Shown here piece after piece: positions 53,680 to 61,867 of a stretch of 64,000 nucleotides of DNA. Position numbers and translations under genes: made by a program. The notes beneath the pieces were generated by a model that saw nothing but the letters and a program-made list of their open reading frames with translations, was not told the origin of the DNA and did not search any database. Source of the stretch: Saccharolobus solfataricus P2 (GTDB taxonomy: Archaea > Thermoproteota > Thermoprotei_A > Sulfolobales > Sulfolobaceae); assembly GCF_000007005.1 (NCBI RefSeq), contig NC_002754.1; one strand, 5' to 3'. Numbering within the stretch: the first letter of the stretch is position 1; each line of letters starts with the position of its first letter.

Positions 53680-54735
53680 TCACCCTTGTTGACTTAAAAG
53701 GTTAACATAAGTTATCTTAGGAGGATTTTCAAAAACATAAGAAGGCCTAACGGGTTCTCTTAAGAATATTGGCCTCTTCTTTGAACCTAATATTGAGCCT
53801 TCTAACAAAACATATGTGTTCCTTACTATTCCATATCTTACAAAACCACCTGCAGGATTTATCTCTTTAGGCTCATCACCAATTTTTATAATCCTCTTAT
53901 TATATTCAGTTCTCCTATGAAAACCTAACTGTCCAGGCTGAGGCGTATAACTAGGTGTTCCTAAAGATGGACCTCTAGTACCTATTTTCCTACTTCCTTT
54001 TCTATGCTTATGCCACCTAGGTAATTCTACCACACTATATCTTTTTATCACACCAGCAAAACCCTTACCCTTAGTAACTCCTACCACATCTATTAGTTGA
54101 CCCTCTTTGAAAACGTCTCTAATTGTGATTTCTTTTCCTAGAATGTTTAATGCATAGTCCAATTGTGATTTCTTTTCTCCTCCACCTATCTGAATCTCTA
54201 CTAAATCTGGCGCTTTTTTACCTAATGATGGTATCTTCCTAGGTTGAGTGGAGACCAAAAGCCTAAAGTAGACTATTCTATCTAGGTTAGATTTGATAAG
54301 ATCCAACTTAGTATTAAATCTTTCATCGAACTTCTTTTTACTTTCATCATCTTTCAAAAAAGATGAAATTGAATGAATTCTTCTCGTAATATCCAAGAAC
54401 TGTAAAGAGGAGGAAGACCAATACTCTGTTATTACGTTTGGTTCGCCTTTACCGTCAATTGCATAAGCTCTTAACGCCAACGGTATAATTGGAGGTACTT
54501 CTAAGACTGTAACCGGCATATATATCTCTTTACCATTAGTAGGAGAGTTAGGCCAATCGTCAATCATAAAAACGTGTGTCATGCCAACCTTATATCCTAC
54601 AAAGCCTAACAATTTTGGATTCTGTGAATTTATTTGAGGCCATGTTCTAGGTGTTGGTAATAACTCGGATGATCTTTTTCTAGGTCTAAGACCAGCTGAC
54701 CCACGTCTAGGTGAGGCTAACTTTCGATGACCCAT
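53680..54735 (-). CDS. rpl3: 50S ribosomal protein uL3
   Basis: PRRGS, GYKVGMTHV, TKGKGFAGVIKR, GQLGFHRRTEYNKR. Confidence 0.97.
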   Translation of the reverse strand: MGHRKLASPRRGSAGLRPRKRSSELLPTPRTWPQINSQNPKLLGFVGYKVGMTHVFMIDDWPNSPTNGKEIYMPVTVLEVPPIIPLALRAYAIDGKGEPNVITEYWSSSSLQFLDITRRIHSISSFLKDDESKKKFDERFNTKLDLIKSNLDRIVYFRLLVSTQPRKIPSLGKKAPDLVEIQIGGGEKKSQLDYALNILGKEITIRDVFKEGQLIDVVGVTKGKGFAGVIKRYSVVELPRWHKHRKGSRKIGTRGPSLGTPSYTPQPGQLGFHRRTEYNKRIIKIGDEPKEINPAGGFVRYGIVRNTYVLLEGSILGSKKRPIFLREPVRPSYVFENPPKITYVNLLSQQG

Positions 54736-54785
54736 TCTTAATCCCCACTAATTGCTATTTCACCTATCACTCAAGCATTATAAAT

Positions 54786-55535
54786 CTAACTTAACAGAAG
54801 GTTTAGAATAGACAGAGAATAAGCTAATGCCTCTTCCGCCCTAATATCTGAAACTCCTTGTTTAATAACAAAGTTATACGACTTATCTAAGTATTGCTTA
54901 CCTAATCTTTGTAATAGATTTCCAGTTGGTGGTCCAATCATCAAGGTAAGGCCATATTTATTGTACAAATTGGTTAGCTGTTCCTTAGCTTGTAAGGGAT
55001 TTTTCCCACTCCTACTAGCAATTATAAGATTATCAAAATTAAATACCTTTTTAAAGTCTATAAACTCATTTTTTACTCCAGTATAATAGAAACCACGATA
55101 GTCGATATAACCAGCTTTTAGTGAGTCAGTAATTAAAATAGTCTTCGATGATGAATTTAATTTCTTGTTCAGACCAAAATCACCCTTATATCCTAATCTT
55201 ATCTCACCTTCAACAGCTTGTTTAAAAATAAAGTGATACGGTATCCCTAGTGGACTCATTAAACCAACTTTCTTCAAATTACGACTAATAGGAACGTATT
55301 TTTTAAGATACGGTGGTAAAAGAGCATATTTAGTAATATCTGTAATTATTTTTTCTAGTTTTCTAGAATTTAGGGAATCTGTTATCCAGTAAATTTTATT
55401 CACTCTAAATGTAGTTGTGACTCTAAGTATAAATGAAAGTTTTAACGTAACTTCAAGAAGAGAATTTTCAACATCAAATATAGATAAAAAAAGGACAACA
55501 TTTAAAGGTTTGTAACGTGGAAAAGGAAACATCAT
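54786..55535 (-). CDS. putative SPOUT RNA methyltransferase (DUF171/SPOUT1-like)
   Basis: PPYLKK, IRAEEAL and the conserved position upstream of rpl3. ATG 55535 overlaps the ileS stop (ATGA). Confidence 0.7.
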
Positions 55536-58500
55536 GTAGACTTCTTTATCCCTATTATATAAGATTCCCCTTCTATATCCCAATCCATTGTAATATCTCC
55601 CTTAGCTTCACCTAGAATTATGTTACTAGCCCTTGTCTCACTCTTAATAAATTCCTCCCATTTCTGAATAGTTTTTACTCTTTCTTCTGGTACCTTCATG
55701 CTAATCTCAATATAATCTAAAACATTTAGTTTTAGTTGTTTCCTCATGAATTGTATCCTCCTTATAATGTCCCTAATTAATCCCTCTTCCTCTTCACTCT
55801 CCGAAATTTCCTTACTTATAACCACAATACCCTTACTAAATTTAGATGAAATGAATCCTTCAACTGTTTCTTCTGAGATAATCACATACGAAGCATTAAG
55901 TATTATATCAAAATTATCTATCTTAGCGACATGCTGCTTTTTATTAAGTATATCCATAGCTATTATATCTCTATTATTCTCAATATATTCTACTATTTTT
56001 GGCGACATACTCTTATATTCCTTCCCTATGATCGACCTATTCGGCTCGACCTTATATTTACTGAAACTCTTAAATCCTTCTATTTTGCTTATTTCTATAT
56101 CTTTAGCGTTTAGCATAGATATCAAGACATCTTTTATTCTACCAACCTTAGCCAATGTATCCTCGTTTTCTATGAAGATATAAACTTTAGCCAATGGCCA
56201 TCTTAATTTTATTCCAGCTTTAGCTCGAGCGTTCAACGAAGCCTCGTTTATTTCTCTAGCAACTTCAAAGGCTCTTTCCAATTCATTATCGATAAATCTC
56301 TCATCATAATTGATACTAGATTCCATTGAAACTGATTCTTTAGCATTAACTACAAAGGATTTATATATTTTTTCAGAAATAAATGGAATTATAGTAGAAG
56401 CTAATATAATCCATTGTTTTAATATATAATAAAGAATATAATACATTGCTATCTTATCTTGAGTATTAGCTTCTATCCACGCCCTTTTTCTTATTAGCCT
56501 TATGTAAAACCTACTGACATCCTCAATTAGAAAGTTTATCAAGTAATTAGTCATTTCGTGAACCTTGTAATCCTTCATGGATTCATTTACTTTCTTTAGC
56601 ATTGAGTTAAACCTTGATAATATCCATAAATCCTCTATCTTAGCATATTTTATAATATCATCAAGAGTATACTTATCGGGTTCAAAGTTATCTAAATTCA
56701 TATACATTGACGCGAAGACGAATGTGTTCCAAATTATTTGTAAATCCCTTTTAGTTAGCTCTAACGCTTTCCATGAAAATTTTGCATCTTCCCATGTAGT
56801 ATTCCTAAGTAACCATAAACGTAATATGTCTCTCCCATATTTTTCAACTACTACTGAAGGTTCAACATAATTACCTAGACTCTTATGCATTTCTCTACCT
56901 TGTTCGTCTAGCATAAATCCATGAACCAATACAGAAGTATATGGAGCTCTATCTAGTAATATTAGCCCAGATCTAAGCAAACTAAAGAACCAACCCCTCA
57001 ACTGATCATGACCTTCTAGAACTAGATCTACTGGACCTAACTCCTTCCACTTCTCTTGCCAATCTTTACCTAAACTAGCAAAGAAAGCCACACCACTATC
57101 AAACCAAACATCTGCAACATCAGGGATTCTCTTAGCAACTCCACCACACTTGTTACATTTTACCCTTACATTATCTATCCACGGTCTATGTAAGTCATTA
57201 GGGACTGGATCTATTGCTATACTCTCTAATTCTTCTTTACTCCCAACTACCATAACATTATTACACCTTTCACAGATCCATATGGGAAGAGGAGTTCCCC
57301 AGAACCTTTGTCTACTTATAACCCAATCTCTGAGTTCCTTAACCATGTTAGATATTCTGGATTTACCCCAATCTGGAATCCAGTTTACTTTCTCTATTTC
57401 ATTGAGCATTTTATCTTTTATTTTTGTAACTCTTATGAACCATTGATCAATAGCTCTAAGTATTAGTGGAGTCTTACATCTCCAACATACCGGATAACGA
57501 TGAACTATTTTCCCTTCAAAGAACAACGTATTTTTAGATTTCAAATCGCTAATTATCGCCTTAGATGCGTCCCTAACTTTCAATCCTTTATATTTTCCAC
57601 CTTCTTCAGTAAATTCTCCTCTATCGTTAACGAACATCACTACTGGAAAACCGTATTTCTGACCTACCGTGAAATCCTCTTCTCCATGTCCAGTAGCACT
57701 ATGAACTAGACCGGTACCATCAGTTAATGTGACTATATTACCAGCATCAACGACTTGATGAAAGTCATCTAATTTAGTCTGGGCACTAACAAACTCTCTT
57801 AGGGGATGCTCGTACTTTATTCCTATTAACTCACTACCTTTATAGGTTCTGAGTATCTTATAATTAGTTATACTTGCCTCTTTCATAACAGCTTCTACAC
57901 GATCCTTTGCAATTACGAGTATCTCACCATTAACCTCTACATCAGCATAATCATAGTCCTTATTTATCATTACAAAGACATTAGATGGTATAGTCCATGG
58001 TGTGGTAGTCCATATTAATAGATATCTGTTTTTCTCACCTTTGATTTTAAATTTGACATAAATGGAGGGATCCTCTAAGTCTCTATACTCAGACACCTCA
58101 TAATCTGATAGAGTCGTTTCACATCTAGGACACCAATGCAATACTGCAGTGCCTTTATCTAGCATCCCTTTTTCATAAGCTTTCTTAATTACACTCCATG
58201 AAGAGCTTATATAAGAAGGGTCTAATGTATAGTAAGGCCTCTCCCAGTCCATAAAGACTCCAACGTTCTTGAAGTTCTGTGTCATTTTATCTGCATTGGA
58301 TAATGCAAACTCTTTGCATTTATTAATGAAAGTTTCAACTCCGATTTTATCTATAATCTCTTGCTTATTTGATATTCCAAGTAGTTTTTCAGTTGCAACT
58401 TCTATAGGTAATCCATGTGTATCATATCCTGGCTGGTCATGAACCCTTTTGCCCAGAACCCTCTGATAACGCAGTATGCAATCCTTTATCACCTTATTCC

Positions 58501-58681
58501 AAATCGTCCCTATATGAGGAGTAGGACTTGAAGGGTATGGAGGACCATCTATAAATAGAAACTTTTCCCTTCTTTTGCTTACAATATCTTTTAGTTTATT
58601 GTAAATTTTATTCTCTTCCCAATACGAAATTATTTCTTCTTCAATCCTCTTAGGATCATAATTACCAGTAAGGGGCTTGAT
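55532..58681 (-). CDS. ileS: isoleucine--tRNA ligase (true start upstream of the track ORF and non-canonical)
   Basis: DGPPY...PHIG HIGH motif at about 58549-58508, [31 protein letters not shown]. Frame is open from 58699 with no in-frame ATG/GTG/TTG until 58492. The start given (ATC 58681) is a guess. Confidence 0.9.
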
Positions 58682-58711
58682 AACGGCAGATAATTCAACT
58701 CACCATACCCT

Positions 58712-58761
58712 ATTAAACTTGACAAGTTTATAAAAATTAAACTTCGTTGTCAATTAAACTT
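58712..58761. promoter_or_regulatory. ileS upstream region: 17-bp palindrome TAAACTTG-A-CAAGTTTA plus three ATTAAACTT direct repeats
   Basis: Palindrome 58714-58730. Repeats start at 58712, 58736 and 58753. Minus-strand TTTTATAA adjoins the palindrome. Confidence 0.45.
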
Positions 58762-58780
58762 TACATTATATACGTTCACG

Positions 58781-59791
58781 TTACATATATTTATAAATTT
58801 CATCCACCATATCCTTTAACTTAGCACTACCACCAACATCCTCCGTTAACTTATTCCCACTTTTGTAAGTCTCTATTATCGCATTCTCTAAAGACTTTGA
58901 TGCCAGAATGTATTTATTCTCCTTAGATAACTCATACATTCTACTAAGCATCATGGAAACAGATAATAGAAATGCCGTAGGATTAGCTATCCCTTTTCCC
59001 GCAATATCAAAAGCAGCTCCATGAACTGGCTCGAACATAGATTTCCTATCTCCAATATTTGCAGATGGTGCTAGACCTAAACTTCCCGCTATTTGGCTGG
59101 CCTCATCGCTTAAAATATCACCATAAACGTTACTAGTTACTATTACATCAAACCGAGTTGGATCTCGTACTAAATTAGCTGCAGCTGCATCAACATACAT
59201 CTCCTCAAAATTCACCTTACCTTTCAAAATTTCTCTGCAAACACTAGCGAAAAGTCCGTCTGTAACTCTCATAACATTAGCCTTATGGACGCATGTAACT
59301 TTACGACGTCTCATTAAAGCATAATTTAATGCCACGTTAACTATTCTTTTAGAGGCAAACTCAGTAGTTACTTTAATAGCTATTGTGACTCCAGTAGATG
59401 TAACGAATTCAAACCCCTTATATAGATCTTCTGTATTTTCCCTGACGATTACTAAATCAACGTTCGGATATTTCGACTGAACATTAGGCAGTGATTTAGC
59501 CGGTCTAATATTAGCGTACATATCATACATTTGCCTCAATTTAACTACAACATCCATTGCGGTCTCTCCAACCGGACCTTTTAGAATCATATCCGCCTTT
59601 TCTATAACGTCTAAGGTGTGTCTAGGTAAGGCTTCACCATATTTATTTAATGCGACATCTCCAGCTTCAACTTCAATTAAGTCTATATCAAGATTATATT
59701 TCTCTATTAACTTAGCTATAATTCTTTTACTTCCCTCATATAACTCAGGGCCTATTCCATCACCAGGAATTACAGCTACTCGAAAAGTCAT
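58781..59791 (-). CDS. leuB: 3-isopropylmalate dehydrogenase (beta-decarboxylating dehydrogenase)
   Basis: PGDGIGPE, LRQMYDMYANIRP, VRENTEDLY, VHKANV, YGDILSDEA, FEPVHGAA. Confidence 0.85.
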   Translation of the reverse strand: MTFRVAVIPGDGIGPELYEGSKRIIAKLIEKYNLDIDLIEVEAGDVALNKYGEALPRHTLDVIEKADMILKGPVGETAMDVVVKLRQMYDMYANIRPAKSLPNVQSKYPNVDLVIVRENTEDLYKGFEFVTSTGVTIAIKVTTEFASKRIVNVALNYALMRRRKVTCVHKANVMRVTDGLFASVCREILKGKVNFEEMYVDAAAANLVRDPTRFDVIVTSNVYGDILSDEASQIAGSLGLAPSANIGDRKSMFEPVHGAAFDIAGKGIANPTAFLLSVSMMLSRMYELSKENKYILASKSLENAIIETYKSGNKLTEDVGGSAKLKDMVDEIYKYM

Positions 59792-59803
59792 ATGTAAAGA
59801 AAA

Positions 59804-60391
59804 CTAGTCTAGCTTAAAACCTTTTGATCTCATCTTATTTAATATCTCCTCTAAGAGACTAGAAGTATATTGAGATGTACGCTTTATAACACTCCACTCG
59901 TACTCTAGAATTCTAACAAGTTTTTCCAAATCTTCACCTTTGTATATATCTAATCTAGTATAATTCACTAGAAAATCAACCGAAATGTAATCTCCCCTAT
60001 TATATGCTCTAGTTAAGTTAGAATTTATTTCCAAATCTAGCGGATTTATGGTAAATATTGACGGATCAGTACTAGAAGTTTTCATACACTCAGCGTAAAT
60101 GACATTCAGATTCTTGAGAACTGGAACGTTATAATCACTATCTATACTAAAGGTTAGTTTATCTAGCATGGAAAGGATGAAAAACGTTGTATCTAAGGTT
60201 ACATGTATAGAACATTTATTATTTTTTTCAAGATTAGAATAAGTTAGTGTGCTCTTGTATATTTTAGACCTAAGTTCATTTGCTTCAACTATTATGCCAA
60301 GTGGTTTTATTATAGGTTTTATCCCTGAAGTACCAACTAACACTTCGTATATTCCATCATGAGGAAAGAACATTTTTAAAAACTTCTTCAT
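59804..60391 (-). CDS. DUF447 family protein (split-barrel)
   Basis: GIYEVLVGT...PLGI...TYSNL and AYNRG pattern. Confidence 0.6.
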   Translation of the reverse strand: MKKFLKMFFPHDGIYEVLVGTSGIKPIIKPLGIIVEANELRSKIYKSTLTYSNLEKNNKCSIHVTLDTTFFILSMLDKLTFSIDSDYNVPVLKNLNVIYAECMKTSSTDPSIFTINPLDLEINSNLTRAYNRGDYISVDFLVNYTRLDIYKGEDLEKLVRILEYEWSVIKRTSQYTSSLLEEILNKMRSKGFKLD

Positions 60392-60400
60392 AAATGACTT

Positions 60401-61867
60401 GTGCTATTGCATTATCTAAAAACCTTATCTAATTACGGTGAAATAATAACGGGATCGAAGAATGAAACAAAATTAGTGAAAGAAATTAGAAAAATACTAG
60501 AAGATAATAGTGACGAAATTAGATTAATCCCAATTAGAGTGCTCAATTGGGAACAGAAAGAACTAATATTTGAATGCGAGTCAAAATTGATAGATGCCAT
60601 TTCGCTACCCTATTCTTTGTCTACCGAGATTGAAGCAGATGTAGTAGATAACTTTAAAGATTGTAATGGTAGAAATTTAATTAAAGTTAGAATCCAAAAT
60701 CTCTATGAAATAAATAAATTGTATATAGAGGCAGTAGAGAATAATTGTTTAGGAATTATCTTTTCACTAGACAATGAGAAAAGAAAATTCATGATAAAGT
60801 ACGGAGATCTTCTAAGTCATAAACCCAGTTATCCACCACCAATACCAGCATTTTATGTTAAAGAGAACGATTTTCCCTATATAAAGGGTAAGTGCAGAAT
60901 CTCGCTGAAAACTGACTTAAACCCTTTTGCGACAGGTTATATCGTAGAAGCCATAAGAAATTCTAGAAATGAAAATAAAATAATACATATTACTGCACAT
61001 CACGATCATTGGTTTATAGGGGAGAGAGACAATCTTTTAGCAGTAGCTTTATTAAGACAATTTAGGTCTAATATCTATGAAACCCATTTAATCTCATTTA
61101 CTGCAGAAGAATCCGGCTCTTTCAATTTCTCAACATTCTCATGGTCTCACGGTTCTAGAGAATTTTTGAAAAATTACAAAAACGTTGATGATATTCTGCT
61201 TAACATCAACATGGATAATATAAGTGAGGAAAGTTTAGTTTTAAAAACTGTACCTGGACTTCTAGAACTCTCTAGAAAATACTTTAAAAACGTTGTTGAA
61301 AGTCCAGAAATTTATAGCGATGGGTATTCATACATAAAAGCTGGAATTCCAAGCATTACAATAGAGAGTTTAGGAAATATCCACTATCATGGGGAATACG
61401 ATATTATAGAAACTGATAAACCAAATGTATTTTCAAATGTAACTACAATATTAGATACAATTAATAAAATAATTAATGAAAATATAGAGTATAAAACACA
61501 TGAAATGAGAGACCAACTTAAAAACAATCTTTGGGAATTACCAGCAGAACTAAAATCATACTTAGTGAATGTGAAGGACATACTCGATAAAAATTATACG
61601 GAGGTGTATAGAAAAATAGTAAAATTATACGGAGGCATACTAGCGTTTAATCAACCTTATTCTAAAGTTGAATTATTTCACAAAATTAAGGGACTAAATA
61701 TAGCAAGAAAAAATGATGTTTGTATTGAGGATCTAGGATGTATTAAGAGACTAAGAAATGATGAAATATATAATAGGTTTTACTTATATTATATTAATGA
61801 ATTAAAGGAATTAATAACTACAGAATATATTAATCAGCTTTATTTTATATTAAAGAAATTCTTCTAA
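60401..61867 (+). CDS. M28 family zinc peptidase with PA-like domain
   Basis: ITAHHDHW, DN, FTAEESG, NMD, SDGYSY, HYH motifs. Confidence 0.75.
   Translation: MLLHYLKTLSNYGEIITGSKNETKLVKEIRKILEDNSDEIRLIPIRVLNWEQKELIFECESKLIDAISLPYSLSTEIEADVVDNFKDCNGRNLIKVRIQNLYEINKLYIEAVENNCLGIIFSLDNEKRKFMIKYGDLLSHKPSYPPPIPAFYVKENDFPYIKGKCRISLKTDLNPFATGYIVEAIRNSRNENKIIHITAHHDHWFIGERDNLLAVALLRQFRSNIYETHLISFTAEESGSFNFSTFSWSHGSREFLKNYKNVDDILLNINMDNISEESLVLKTVPGLLELSRKYFKNVVESPEIYSDGYSYIKAGIPSITIESLGNIHYHGEYDIIETDKPNVFSNVTTILDTINKIINENIEYKTHEMRDQLKNNLWELPAELKSYLVNVKDILDKNYTEVYRKIVKLYGGILAFNQPYSKVELFHKIKGLNIARKNDVCIEDLGCIKRLRNDEIYNRFYLYYINELKELITTEYINQLYFILKKFF

Follow-up and report, generated by a model that had tools for sequence, protein, structure and literature searches.

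The window, a stretch of 64,000 nucleotides from Saccharolobus solfataricus P2, carries on its minus strand the gene ileS, which was identified as that of a class I isoleucyl-tRNA synthetase (IleRS) by the Pfam domains tRNA-synt_1 and Anticodon_1 of its homologues and by its HIGH signature (Table 1). The segment used for the IleRS tree (the first 560 residues from F-x-D-G-P-P-Y) was 93% identical to the IleRS of S. islandicus, and no other aminoacyl-tRNA synthetase gene is present in the window. A first-pass annotation had noted that this essential gene lacks a canonical start codon upstream of its HIGH motif, and re-reading of the sequence bore this out: after TGA 58702-58700 the ileS frame runs through 69 codons without ATG, GTG or TTG, the first being GTG 58492, and a protein begun there would lose the motif, as H-I-G-T (58516-58505) lies upstream of it. 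Codon usage alone gives such a run a chance of P ~0.06, so that it is unremarkable in itself and the key point is the lack of a start upstream of HIGH. Past the TGA the frame reads GTT GAA TTA TCT GCC GTT ATC AAG..., and the canonical-start ORF in the ORF listing of the window is 55532..58492 (986 aa). Public databases store exactly this gene both with 986 aa (from GTG 58492) and with 1049 aa (M for ATC 58681), which implies that annotators met the start problem and left it without a solution. The problem is systematic, as public IleRS entries either have 979-993 aa and lack HIGH or begin at arbitrary ATC, ATT, ATA or CTG codons. An in-frame non-canonical start farther upstream was rejected, since the frame is already closed at GGTGR or ahead of it, by TGA in the window and by TAA or TGA in relatives.

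Table 1. Features of the ileS start region in the window (positions in the 64,000-nt stretch)
Feature	Position	Strand	Remarks
TATA box TTTTTATAAA of the ileS promoter	58727..58736	-	-32..-23 from the first G of GGTGA
Mini-ORF ATG GTG AGT TGA, frame 0	58695..58706	-	only GTG-NNN-stop kept outside Saccharolobus
17-nt element GGTGA-GTT-GAA-ATTATC-T	58688..58704	-	consensus GGTGR NNY RRA ATTATC Y; predicted ileS mRNA 5' end, putative start/recoding site
GGTGA, SD core	58700..58704	-	contains the conserved GTG 58703-58701; SD calibration on window genes
TGA in the ileS frame	58700..58702	-	closes the frame upstream; TGG in other lineages
ATT ATC, two frame-0 Ile codons	58689..58694	-	ATT 5 nt past GGTGA; proposed near-cognate start and hungry-codon sensor
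Frame 0 from ATT: ATT ATC TGC CGT TAT CAA GCC CCT TAC TGG TAA	58662..58694	-	dead-end product if no shift
TTA TCT, first conserved ileS-frame (+1) codons	58688..58693	-	TTA 6 nt past GGTGA, modal SD spacing
ileS CDS, TTA to stop	55532..58693	-	IleRS frame; homologues with Pfam tRNA-synt_1, Anticodon_1, DUF5915
ATC, start in the 1049-aa database model (MKPLTGNY...)	58679..58681	-	ATT there in S. islandicus; near-cognate not conserved
HIGH-type signature CAT ATA GGG ACG (H-I-G-T)	58505..58516	-	sequence
GTG, first canonical in-frame codon	58490..58492	-	start of the 986-aa database model, without HIGH

The mini-ORF described earlier just upstream was found as stated (minus strand: ATG 58706-04, GTG 58703-01, AGT 58700-98, TGA 58697-95); it is out of frame, and a +1 shift would be needed to enter the ileS frame from it. 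The SD motif GGTGA was likewise confirmed at 58704-58700 on the minus strand. ATG 58706 is confined to Saccharolobus, and the conserved start-like codon is the GTG within GGTG. The pattern GGTGR-N5-ATTATC was present in 24/24 distinct Sulfolobales-type loci examined (11 named taxa and metagenomes, window included), and in all 24 the ileS frame is +1 relative to GTG and to ATT-ATC. From ATT to FxDGPPY the distance was 136, 139 or 142 nt, so that the +1 phase is constant despite 3-nt indels. The element pattern occurs once in the window, against 0.09 occurrences expected. Across 21 lineages GGTG (+1..+4) and ATTATC (+11..+16) are invariant and further positions are restricted (+5 R, +8 Y, +9 R, +10 A, +17 Y); positions -8..-1 and those from +18 onward are variable, conservation beginning sharply at the first G. 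The in-frame TGA of the window reads TGG in other lineages because this codon is the GR end of GGTGR. Counted from GTG, the third codon is TGA, TAA or TAG in 20/25 loci, CGA in 4/25 and TAC in 1/25, the last being Aramenus, with a sense codon where most other loci close the GTG frame.

The composition of the element was compared with codon usage and with its variation among lineages. Both ATT and ATC are decoded by tRNA-Ile(GAU), and among Ile codons in the window ATC makes up only 10% and ATA 55%. The Leu codon of the element is always TTA (43% usage) and the Ser codon always TCY (33%), and at 16 four-fold sites ileS codon 2 ends in T in 14 and in C in 2, never in A or G, for which 49% would be expected. 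The frame-0 reading from ATT varies in length and sequence among lineages. One A-to-G substitution in TTA would yield TTG, a canonical start at ideal spacing, and this was never seen. On this pattern the constraint evidently is on nucleotides and not on amino acids, and ileS, by the same comparison, is a gene without a normal start codon that begins inside a conserved 17-nt signal.

The SD motif was calibrated on 18 SD-led genes of the window, in which GGTGR is followed by a spacer of 4-6 nt (mode 6) before the start codon; in one of them the identical GGTGAGTTGAA precedes GTG. Applied to ileS, this spacing would put ATT (spacer 5) or TTA (spacer 6) in the P site; both stand at SD-compatible spacing, neither is canonical, and the SD would coincide with the very 5' terminus of the RNA. 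Pairing of an SD at the extreme mRNA 5' end is unproven in Sulfolobus. Relative to the first G of GGTG, the 21 lineages share a T/A-rich box at -30..-23 and an AT-rich stretch at -12..-9, and start codons of the non-SD genes of the window show similar TATA geometry. As the element lies 22-23 nt past the TATA box, it is predicted to form the 5' terminus of the ileS transcript, and the TATA box is centred ~26-27 nt upstream of this predicted 5'-terminal start region, as in leaderless or very short-leader genes. From this promoter geometry we infer that ileS transcription starts at GGTG.

Three nested lineages have regained a canonical in-frame start. The starts of L082 (GTG) and HS-7 (ATG), together with ACG in L003, align with the TTA position, and in Metallosphaera the loss of one base brought the GTG of GGTG in frame, after which ATTATC decays; this deletion suggests that GUG itself may be an active start. 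In the IleRS tree the basal Sulfodiicoccus lineage carries the element, which makes it ancestral to the Sulfolobales clade in that tree.

A related arrangement was found in the clade with Thermofilum pendens. There the same 5'-terminal GGTGR, 21-27 nt past a TATA box, opens separate short upstream ORFs, and a normal ileS with SD and ATG follows downstream. A first class of these ORFs (5 loci) reads GTG-x-CCY-ATT-ATY-... (M-x-P-I-I...) with the synonymous changes CCT/CCC, ATC/ATT and CGC/CGT, and another type (6 loci and T. pendens) reads ATG-x-CRC-CAA-ATT-x-stop (...R-Q-I-x-stop); T. pendens has a 7-bp hairpin and a U5 run after its ORF. At the sequence level these ORFs have the marks of leader peptides, namely the P-I-I and R-Q-I-x-stop cores, synonymous variation and a fixed stop position. 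At the window locus, unlike in these separate ORFs, ATT ATC come after the stop codon. Ile codons evidently are the conserved core in all three architectures, and by this comparison the upstream ORFs are homologous to the element. They point to a family, previously undescribed, of Ile-codon upstream ORFs that precede ileS in other Thermoprotei.

Conservation, phase and the shared Ile-codon core point to a built-in recoding switch, probably isoleucine-sensing, and not to an error. Tentatively, and at less than an even chance, we favour a model in which, in this Saccharolobus and nearly all Sulfolobaceae, non-canonical initiation is followed by a +1 shift at AUU-AUC to yield IleRS, and the shift senses the supply of Ile-tRNA. 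The transcript would start at GGUGA (58704). The near-cognate AUU (spacer 5) would reach the P site by one of two routes, either from the 5'-proximal GUG, which would place the ribosome in frame 0 on a two-codon mini-cistron ending at UGA, or by pairing of GGUGA with the 16S 3' end. AUC (Ile) would then be the following frame-0 codon, and IleRS would be made only if the ribosome moved +1 (AUU-A-UCU) and continued with Ser-Ala-Val-Ile-Lys-Pro-Leu.... Because the competing frame-0 event decodes an Ile codon, the shift would be favoured when Ile-tRNA(Ile) is scarce, so that scarcity would yield more shifting and more IleRS in a homeostatic loop. A stop lies between GUG and AUU AUC in 20/25 loci, which means that there the Ile codons could be read in frame 0 only by (re-)initiation on AUU. 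Initiator tRNA on AUU cannot re-pair on UUA, and the shift would thus be of the non-slippage, Ty3-like kind; we know of no documented case of such a shift in archaea or at an initiation complex. Slightly more doubtful is the wider proposal that Sulfolobaceae gauge Ile-tRNA(Ile) by the ribosome, an AUU-bound ribosome lacking Ile-tRNA at AUC moving +1, and that the device arose when an ancestral leaderless leader peptide with Ile codons, which the Thermofilum clade still has as a separate ORF, was fused to the main ORF. Comparative data favour two readings already raised in the first-pass annotation, a +1 frameshift from the mini-ORF or re-initiation; the shift itself we infer, as we do the transcription start, the P-site codon at initiation and the sensing of isoleucine. 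The earlier suggestion of autoregulation by a weak start or recoding event is upheld in spirit, though it had overlooked the ATT-ATC Ile codons, the upstream ORFs of Thermoprotei and GTG as the conserved start-like codon.

An unlikely alternative is a +1 shift as in prfB or antizyme, in which a leaderless mRNA would be started at GUG (AUG-GUG in Saccharolobus), one codon would be read and a slow stop codon or CGA in the A site would promote the shift at AGU-U-GAA, giving M(V)S-E-L-S-A-V-I-K.... This would agree with the promoter geometry that sets the 5' end at GGUG, with a frame-0 stop that differs (TGA/TAA/TAG) but is fixed in position, with the T at +8 kept at four-fold sites, with the rare CGA (1.0 per 1000 codons) in four loci and with the in-frame GTG that Metallosphaera fixed through its one-base loss. 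The P-site codon, however, varies (AGT, GGT, ATC, GTC, AGC, ATG, GGC, GTT, GAC, GTA) and would permit no +1 re-pairing, the stop is followed by A, which favours termination in eukaryote-type systems, and Aramenus has the sense codon TAC at the stop position. The invariant ATTATC-Y would moreover be left without a role, and there would be no link to isoleucine. As a separate observation, CGA in place of the stop in four loci suits a frameshift site with a slow third codon equally well as, or better than, the AUU-AUC model.

Initiation without any frameshift appears quite unlikely. Here the SD GGUGA would set the P site on the in-frame UUA (spacer 6), de novo or by position-dependent re-initiation after the GUG mini-cistron, whose stop lies directly upstream. 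The spacer of 6 is the modal one in the genome and also that of the window gene in which the same SD region leads to GTG, and the GTG, ACG and ATG of the reverted lineages stand exactly at the TTA position. UUA, on the other hand, has two mismatches to AUG and, to our knowledge, does not serve as a start codon anywhere; nor would this reading account for the invariance of the A that precedes TTA and of the C in ATC, or for the Ile-codon core of the homologous upstream ORFs.

Initiation at a near-cognate codon before K-P-L (ATC 58681 or GTT 58684), an option of the first-pass annotation and in essence the database model, is improbable; it would perhaps be leaderless from a proximal AT-rich box, with the element as a separate regulatory site in RNA or DNA. 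RefSeq-type annotation does use ATC here and ATT in S. islandicus, a canonical codon stands nearby in S. tengchongensis and Sulfolobus sp. C3 (GTG) and in L081 (ATG), and a further AT-rich stretch is found at -12..-9. The codon itself varies, however, being ATC, ATT or ATA in some lineages and GTA or GTT in about half, and such a start would have neither an SD nor a consistently placed TATA box. Nor would it explain the invariant element and the constant phase that this keeps with the ORF across 3-nt indels. Between the element and the ATC position lie 10, 13 or 16 nt, in steps of 3, and substitutions there fall at ileS third positions, which suggests that the stretch before the ATC position is already translated in the ileS frame.

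Very improbable is a 5'-terminal hairpin of GGUGR, a 6-nt loop and UUAUC that would serve as an SD mimic or as the target of a protein, whether IleRS or some other regulator, with the Ile codons incidental. Pairing of GGUGA with UUAUC (G-C, G-U, U-A, G-U, A-U) is possible, A or G at +5 would both pair with U, and some leaders of the Thermofilum clade contain GGUGG-AAUGUA-CCACC or CCGCC. The predicted stability of -1.0 kcal/mol at 37 C, however, becomes +4.4 at 75 C, leaving the hairpin unfolded at growth temperature; UUAUC, the weakest of eight possible partners, is used exclusively, the class-1 upstream ORFs exchange ATC for ATT, a change that is synonymous yet weakens the stem, and no start codon would be supplied. 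A sequencing or assembly indel, also suggested earlier, is refuted, and with decay to a pseudogene as the other form of this explanation it has next to no probability left, since 24 distinct loci, in complete and independent genomes from 11 named taxa and in many metagenomes, show the identical out-of-frame layout, the ORF is intact over 1055 codons, and this essential gene was met with no second copy of ileS.

Three further candidates were rejected or disfavoured. Transcriptional slippage was set aside as the element has no homopolymer run, and a bulge-helix-bulge (BHB) mini-intron or a gene-60-like hop as inspection by eye showed neither BHB geometry nor take-off and landing codons that match. 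An operator at the DNA level is disfavoured, as the element lacks palindromic symmetry and nothing about a DNA site would call for a fixed reading phase.

Almost nothing is known of how Archaea regulate their aminoacyl-tRNA synthetases. Our literature search found nothing relevant on Sulfolobus ileS frameshifting, upstream ORFs, locus tags or the element, and no description of leader-peptide control in Archaea; ileS entries are absent from the supplements of PMC10883916, PMC8448881 and PMC10663502, and Saci_0599 is present in PMC10653856 with expression values only. Recoding in archaeal cellular genes so far comprises only Sec/Pyl read-through and one -1 frameshift (PMC8211752), and a 2021 review of archaeal recoding includes no case of the present kind. 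An essential and universally present gene must here use a non-standard event across a whole family, including S. solfataricus, S. islandicus and S. acidocaldarius. These three are genetically tractable model organisms. If the AUU-AUC model were true, ileS would be the first cellular archaeal gene with a programmed +1 frameshift and the first aminoacyl-tRNA synthetase gene under hungry-codon frameshift control.

The proposed switch resembles several known systems in part. As in prfB (RF2) and antizyme, an essential or regulatory gene would have its main frame reached by an early +1 shift, with a stop at or near the shift site, an SD-like GG-rich element just upstream and a shift rate tied to the supply of what the gene product provides. 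Unlike prfB, the element has no slippery CUU-U-type P-site codon, and its GGTGR overlaps the codon before the stop (spacing -1), whereas in prfB the SD lies ~3 nt before the P-site codon. The event would also differ from both in taking place at codons 1-5 of a 5'-terminal mini-cistron, or at initiation, and in sensing Ile-tRNA at AUC instead of a release factor or polyamines. For Archaea, documentation is confined to -1 frameshifting in fucA1 and to viral cases (PMC8211752, PMC1616953). The likeness to infC (IF3) lies in a conserved near-cognate AUU at SD spacing in a gene of the translation apparatus, with a canonical start avoided although one mutation away. In contrast to infC, ATT at spacer 5 is here always in phase 1 relative to ileS, so that no protein could start from AUU without the +1 step, and the factor sensed would not be an initiation factor.

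With the leaders of ilv, thr and pheST the ileS leaders would share a very short 5' ORF with cognate codons (I-I or Q-I) as its core; in the window, unlike in leader-peptide systems, the Ile codons stand behind a stop and overlap ileS out of frame, and, unlike in attenuators, there is no terminator or antiterminator. At 75 C the first 40 nt were predicted to form no stable structure, and the element in the window is not followed by a U-tract. Closest to the proposed step is the +1 shift of Ty3, with AUU-A-UCY matching its non-re-pairing P-site tRNA, limiting frame-0 A-site codon and fixed +1 codon (UCY); Ty3, however, shifts during elongation with a downstream stimulator, and ileS would do so in a (re-)initiation complex with an upstream SD. 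Rfam searches gave no relevant match, T-box included, in the window at 58400-58900 (E<=10) and none in ten outgroup loci (E<=0.5). As with the T-box leaders of bacterial ileS, the leader would carry a cis element that reports the status of tRNA-Ile; unlike a T-box, this element is only 17 nt long and unstructured at growth temperature, so that sensing would go through decoding and not through binding of the tRNA by a riboswitch.

Read on the minus strand from 58706 downward, the ileS start region is ATG GTG AGT TGA ATT ATC TGC C..., preceded by TAATAGGGT, and the codons of the IleRS frame are TGA (58702-00), GTT, GAA, TTA, TCT, GCC, GTT, ATC, AAG, CCC and so on. All statements of the first-pass annotation on this sequence were correct on rechecking: no ATG, GTG or TTG occurs in frame before the GTG at 58492, 69 codons on; a start there would lose the HIGH motif, as this GTG directly follows H-I-G-T; and the upstream mini-ORF is one base out of frame, the IleRS frame being reached from it by a +1 shift. 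From codon usage, a 69-codon run without a canonical start has a probability of about 0.06, so not the run itself but its placement ahead of the catalytic motif and the pattern in relatives give it significance. Public databases hold the window gene twice, as a 986-aa product starting at this GTG and lacking HIGH, and as a 1049-aa product in which M replaces an ATC codon. The nearest public IleRS, from S. islandicus (92% identity in an N-terminal search, 93% over the tree segment, i.e. the first 560 residues from F-x-D-G-P-P-Y), was deposited with 980 and 1049 aa in different strains. Annotation of the N-terminus is inconsistent family-wide, with gene-caller N-termini very unlike one another, among them truncated 979-993-aa proteins without HIGH and 'starts' at ATA, ATT or CTG. 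Stygiolobus and several metagenomic enzymes were called at 979-993 aa, that of A. manzaensis from ATA and that of Sulfolobus sp. C3 from CTG.

Coordinates of features in the window and in the Thermofilum pendens Hrk5 locus (L151, CP000505)
Feature	Coordinates	Strand	Basis
17-nt element	58704-58688	minus
Mini-ORF ATG-GTG-AGT-TGA	58706-58695	minus	sequence
HIGH-type motif H-I-G-T	58516-58505	minus	sequence
ATC replaced by M in the 1049-aa record	58681-58679	minus	database record
GTG start of the 986-aa record	58492-58490	minus	database record
Inverted repeat TTGACAA...TTGTCAA	58753-58747 and 58726-58720	minus
AGTTTAAT, three copies in the ileS promoter	58760, 58743, 58719	minus
Gene with ileS-identical SD and spacer	~49447-49434	minus
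Conserved gene order	53680-61867
T. pendens upstream ORF	L151 1096-1122
T. pendens hairpin	L151 1117-1134
T. pendens TTTTT	L151 1140-1144

Comparison with the DNA of S. islandicus, S. tengchongensis, Acidianus manzaensis, S. acidocaldarius, Sulfurisphaera ohwakuensis, Stygiolobus caldivivus, Sulfodiicoccus acidiphilus, Sulfuracidifex tepidarius, Sulfolobus sp. C3, Sulfolobaceae RB850M, Ca. Aramenus and 80 metagenomic loci led to GGTGR-N5-ATTATC in every Sulfolobaceae-type locus (24 distinct sequences, window included). A sequencing indel, proposed earlier as one cause, can be discarded because the same out-of-frame layout recurs in 24 distinct loci and the missing start is not strain-specific. 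In these loci the ATT lies 136, 139 or 142 nt from the F-x-D-G-P-P-Y codons, so that the IleRS frame is always +1 to ATT and GTG despite 3-nt indels. In a position-by-position nucleotide profile of 21 lineages (+1 being the first G of GGTGR), +1 to +4 (GGTG) and +11 to +16 (ATTATC) were invariant and R +5, Y +8, R +9, A +10 and Y +17 restricted, with near-random composition at -8 to -1 and from +18 onward. The element pattern has one match in the 64-kb window (0.09 expected). Read in the IleRS frame it is TGR-NNY-RRA-TTA-TCY: Leu is encoded only by TTA (43% of the window's Leu codons) and Ser only by TCT or TCC (together 33% of its Ser codons). Where the codon before RRA is four-fold degenerate (16 cases), it ends in T 14 times and in C twice and never in A or G, which together make up 49% of such sites. 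As the lineages are not independent, these tallies are indications rather than P values. In the GTG frame (frame 0) it reads GTG-NNN-(TGA/TAA/TAG)-ATT-ATC, with a stop of fixed position and varying identity in 20 of 25 loci, replaced in four by CGA, of the rarest codon class in the window (1.0 per 1000), and in Aramenus by TAC. ATT and ATC are the Ile codons decoded by tRNA-Ile(GAU); ATA is never used, though it is the commonest Ile codon of the window (55%). Constraint at the nucleotide level and in frame 0 is suggested by these patterns. A single transition from TTA to TTG would suffice for a canonical start, in frame and ideally spaced, and was never observed, so selection is acting against such a start.

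Upstream of the first G, a T/A box at -30 to -23 and an AT-rich stretch at -12 to -9 (21 lineages) have the geometry expected of a canonical archaeal promoter for a transcript predicted to start at this G; in other window genes a TATA-like peak precedes the ATG by an equal distance. Conservation sets in abruptly at this G, consistent with an RNA 5' end at that base. In the basal lineages Sulfodiicoccus acidiphilus (L065/L066) and L087/L088, which keep the full element, annotators placed the start at an in-frame ATG that precedes GGTGG by 11 nt; lying only 13-14 nt past the TATA-like box, this ATG probably precedes the transcript start. A 7-bp inverted repeat flanks the ileS TATA box, and since its left arm is not kept in S. 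islandicus, it may be a strain-specific operator or a coincidence. The window shares the gene order DUF447 - isocitrate/isopropylmalate dehydrogenase family - ileS - Methyltrn_RNA_3 - rpl3 with every Sulfolobaceae locus. About 75 nt separate the end of the dehydrogenase gene from the element, which follows it on the same strand, so that read-through transcripts with an internal element are possible.

Ribosome placement was calibrated on 18 SD-led genes of the window, in which GGTGR and a spacer of 4-6 nt (4 nt in two genes, 5 nt in four, 6 nt in ten) precede ATG, GTG or TTG. For ileS, a spacer of 5 leads to ATT (frame 0) and one of 6 to TTA (IleRS frame); as an alternative to SD placement, the 5'-proximal GUG is compatible with a leaderless mode. 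In one SD-led gene, which has 138 codons and lies within the ribosomal-protein region, the identical GGTGAGTTGAA precedes a normal GTG; this gene offers a natural control for reporter experiments with ileS. A 5-bp hairpin GGUGA/UUAUC is possible, with predicted energies of -1.0 kcal/mol at 37 °C and +4.4 at 75 °C.

In the IleRS tree the Sulfolobales clade (support 100/100) splits first into the element-bearing Sulfodiicoccus lineage and the rest, so the element is ancestral to the clade. It is missing from three nested lineages. In Metallosphaera, one missing base brings the GTG of what was GGTG into frame (GTG + 6 nt + TTA/TCA TCT), and the first G and ATTATC have decayed; in L082/L003 the upstream gene now abuts and GGTGA + 6 nt leads to GTG, or to ACG in L003, exactly at the TTA position; and Sulfolobales HS-7 has ATG at that position. 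Thus both candidate entry points, the +2 GUG and the +12 codon, became a canonical start somewhere, and the constraint on ATTATC vanishes once such a start is gained. The ACG of L003 (MAG contig CAYRZA010000038.1), which lies about 20 nt before locus position 1370 and stands at the SD-defined start (GGTGA + 6 nt) where the sister lineage L082 has GTG, could be a MAG error or a further non-canonical start of ileS.

Other Thermoprotei start ileS with a normal SD and ATG, GTG or TTG, followed by G-x-[IV]-[GK]-K-L, and this start aligns with the Sulfolobaceae TTA. In one clade, which includes T. pendens, the same GGTGR lies 21-27 nt past a TATA box, precedes the real start by about 65-115 nt, and opens short ORFs of variable phase in two classes that interleave in the tree. 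Class 1 (five distinct loci: L102, L105, L120, L125, L129) reads GTG-x-CCY-ATT-ATY-CGY/CAC/TGT... (M-x-P-I-I-..., 10-14 codons), with only synonymous core differences (CCT/CCC, ATC/ATT, CGC/CGT). Class 2 (six loci and T. pendens; listed are L101, L109, L113, L121, L139 and L151) reads ATG-x-CRC-CAA-ATT-x-TAR (M-x-R/H-Q-I-x-stop) with a fixed stop position. By chance, partly estimated, about 0.3 class 2 core and 0.01 class 1 motif matches are expected in the scanned sequence. The T. pendens ORF, GTG GTG TTG ACC CGC CAA ATT GCT TAG, has its stop inside a perfect 7-bp hairpin (GCTTAGC/GCTAAGC) followed by T5, an attenuator-like arrangement. A CCTAGT(T) motif is found 20-35 nt ahead of the main start in several of these leaders. 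Ile codons thus form the conserved core of three different 5'-terminal mini-ORF architectures before ileS, none of which is covered by an Rfam family in the window or outgroup loci.

The window ileS begins within a deeply conserved, promoter-proximal 17-nt element in which the start-like codons GUG, AUU and AUC share a frame from which the coding frame of the protein is offset by +1, an arrangement under purifying selection and evolutionarily linked to Ile-codon leader ORFs. We are highly confident that it is no artefact but a conserved signal for recoding or for a non-canonical start. For the route to the +1 frame we infer that ribosomes would enter in frame 0 by one of two routes: they bind the SD directly, or they start leaderless at GUG, terminate at once and re-initiate while tethered by the SD. 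The near-cognate AUU would then occupy the P site, and a delay in the reading of the A-site AUC by Ile-tRNA would let the ribosome move by +1, yielding Met-Ser-Ala-Val-Ile-Lys-Pro-Leu...; scarce charged tRNA-Ile would then induce IleRS homeostatically. This specific mechanism is tentative and may well be wrong. We prefer it as it alone assigns a role to each conserved base (SD, spacer length, A-U-U, A-U-C, Y) and accounts for the avoidance of a canonical start and for the gene's identity; its weakness is that re-pairing of the initiator tRNA cannot take part in the shift, and we know of no similar step at an initiation complex. Among the rivals, a prfB- or antizyme-like shift at the stop or CGA codon has the CGA substitutions and Metallosphaera in its favour, yet leaves ATTATC without explanation. 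Another rival, initiation directly on UUA, would agree with the 6-nt spacer. A further one, the downstream ATC start of the databases, does not account for the invariant element.

The cases given in a 2021 review of recoding in Archaea are limited to Sec/Pyl read-through, the -1 frameshift in fucA1 of S. solfataricus and viral examples (PMC8211752; PMC1616953), and the ileS element is absent from a genome-wide survey of frame transitions (PMC3711429); our literature search on it found no paper. Its occurrence in an essential gene of tractable model archaea makes it of high interest. The nearest analogues are prfB and antizyme (+1 autoregulation), infC (AUU start), bacterial leader peptides and Ty3-type non-slippage frameshifting, and the element lacks some defining features of each of them.
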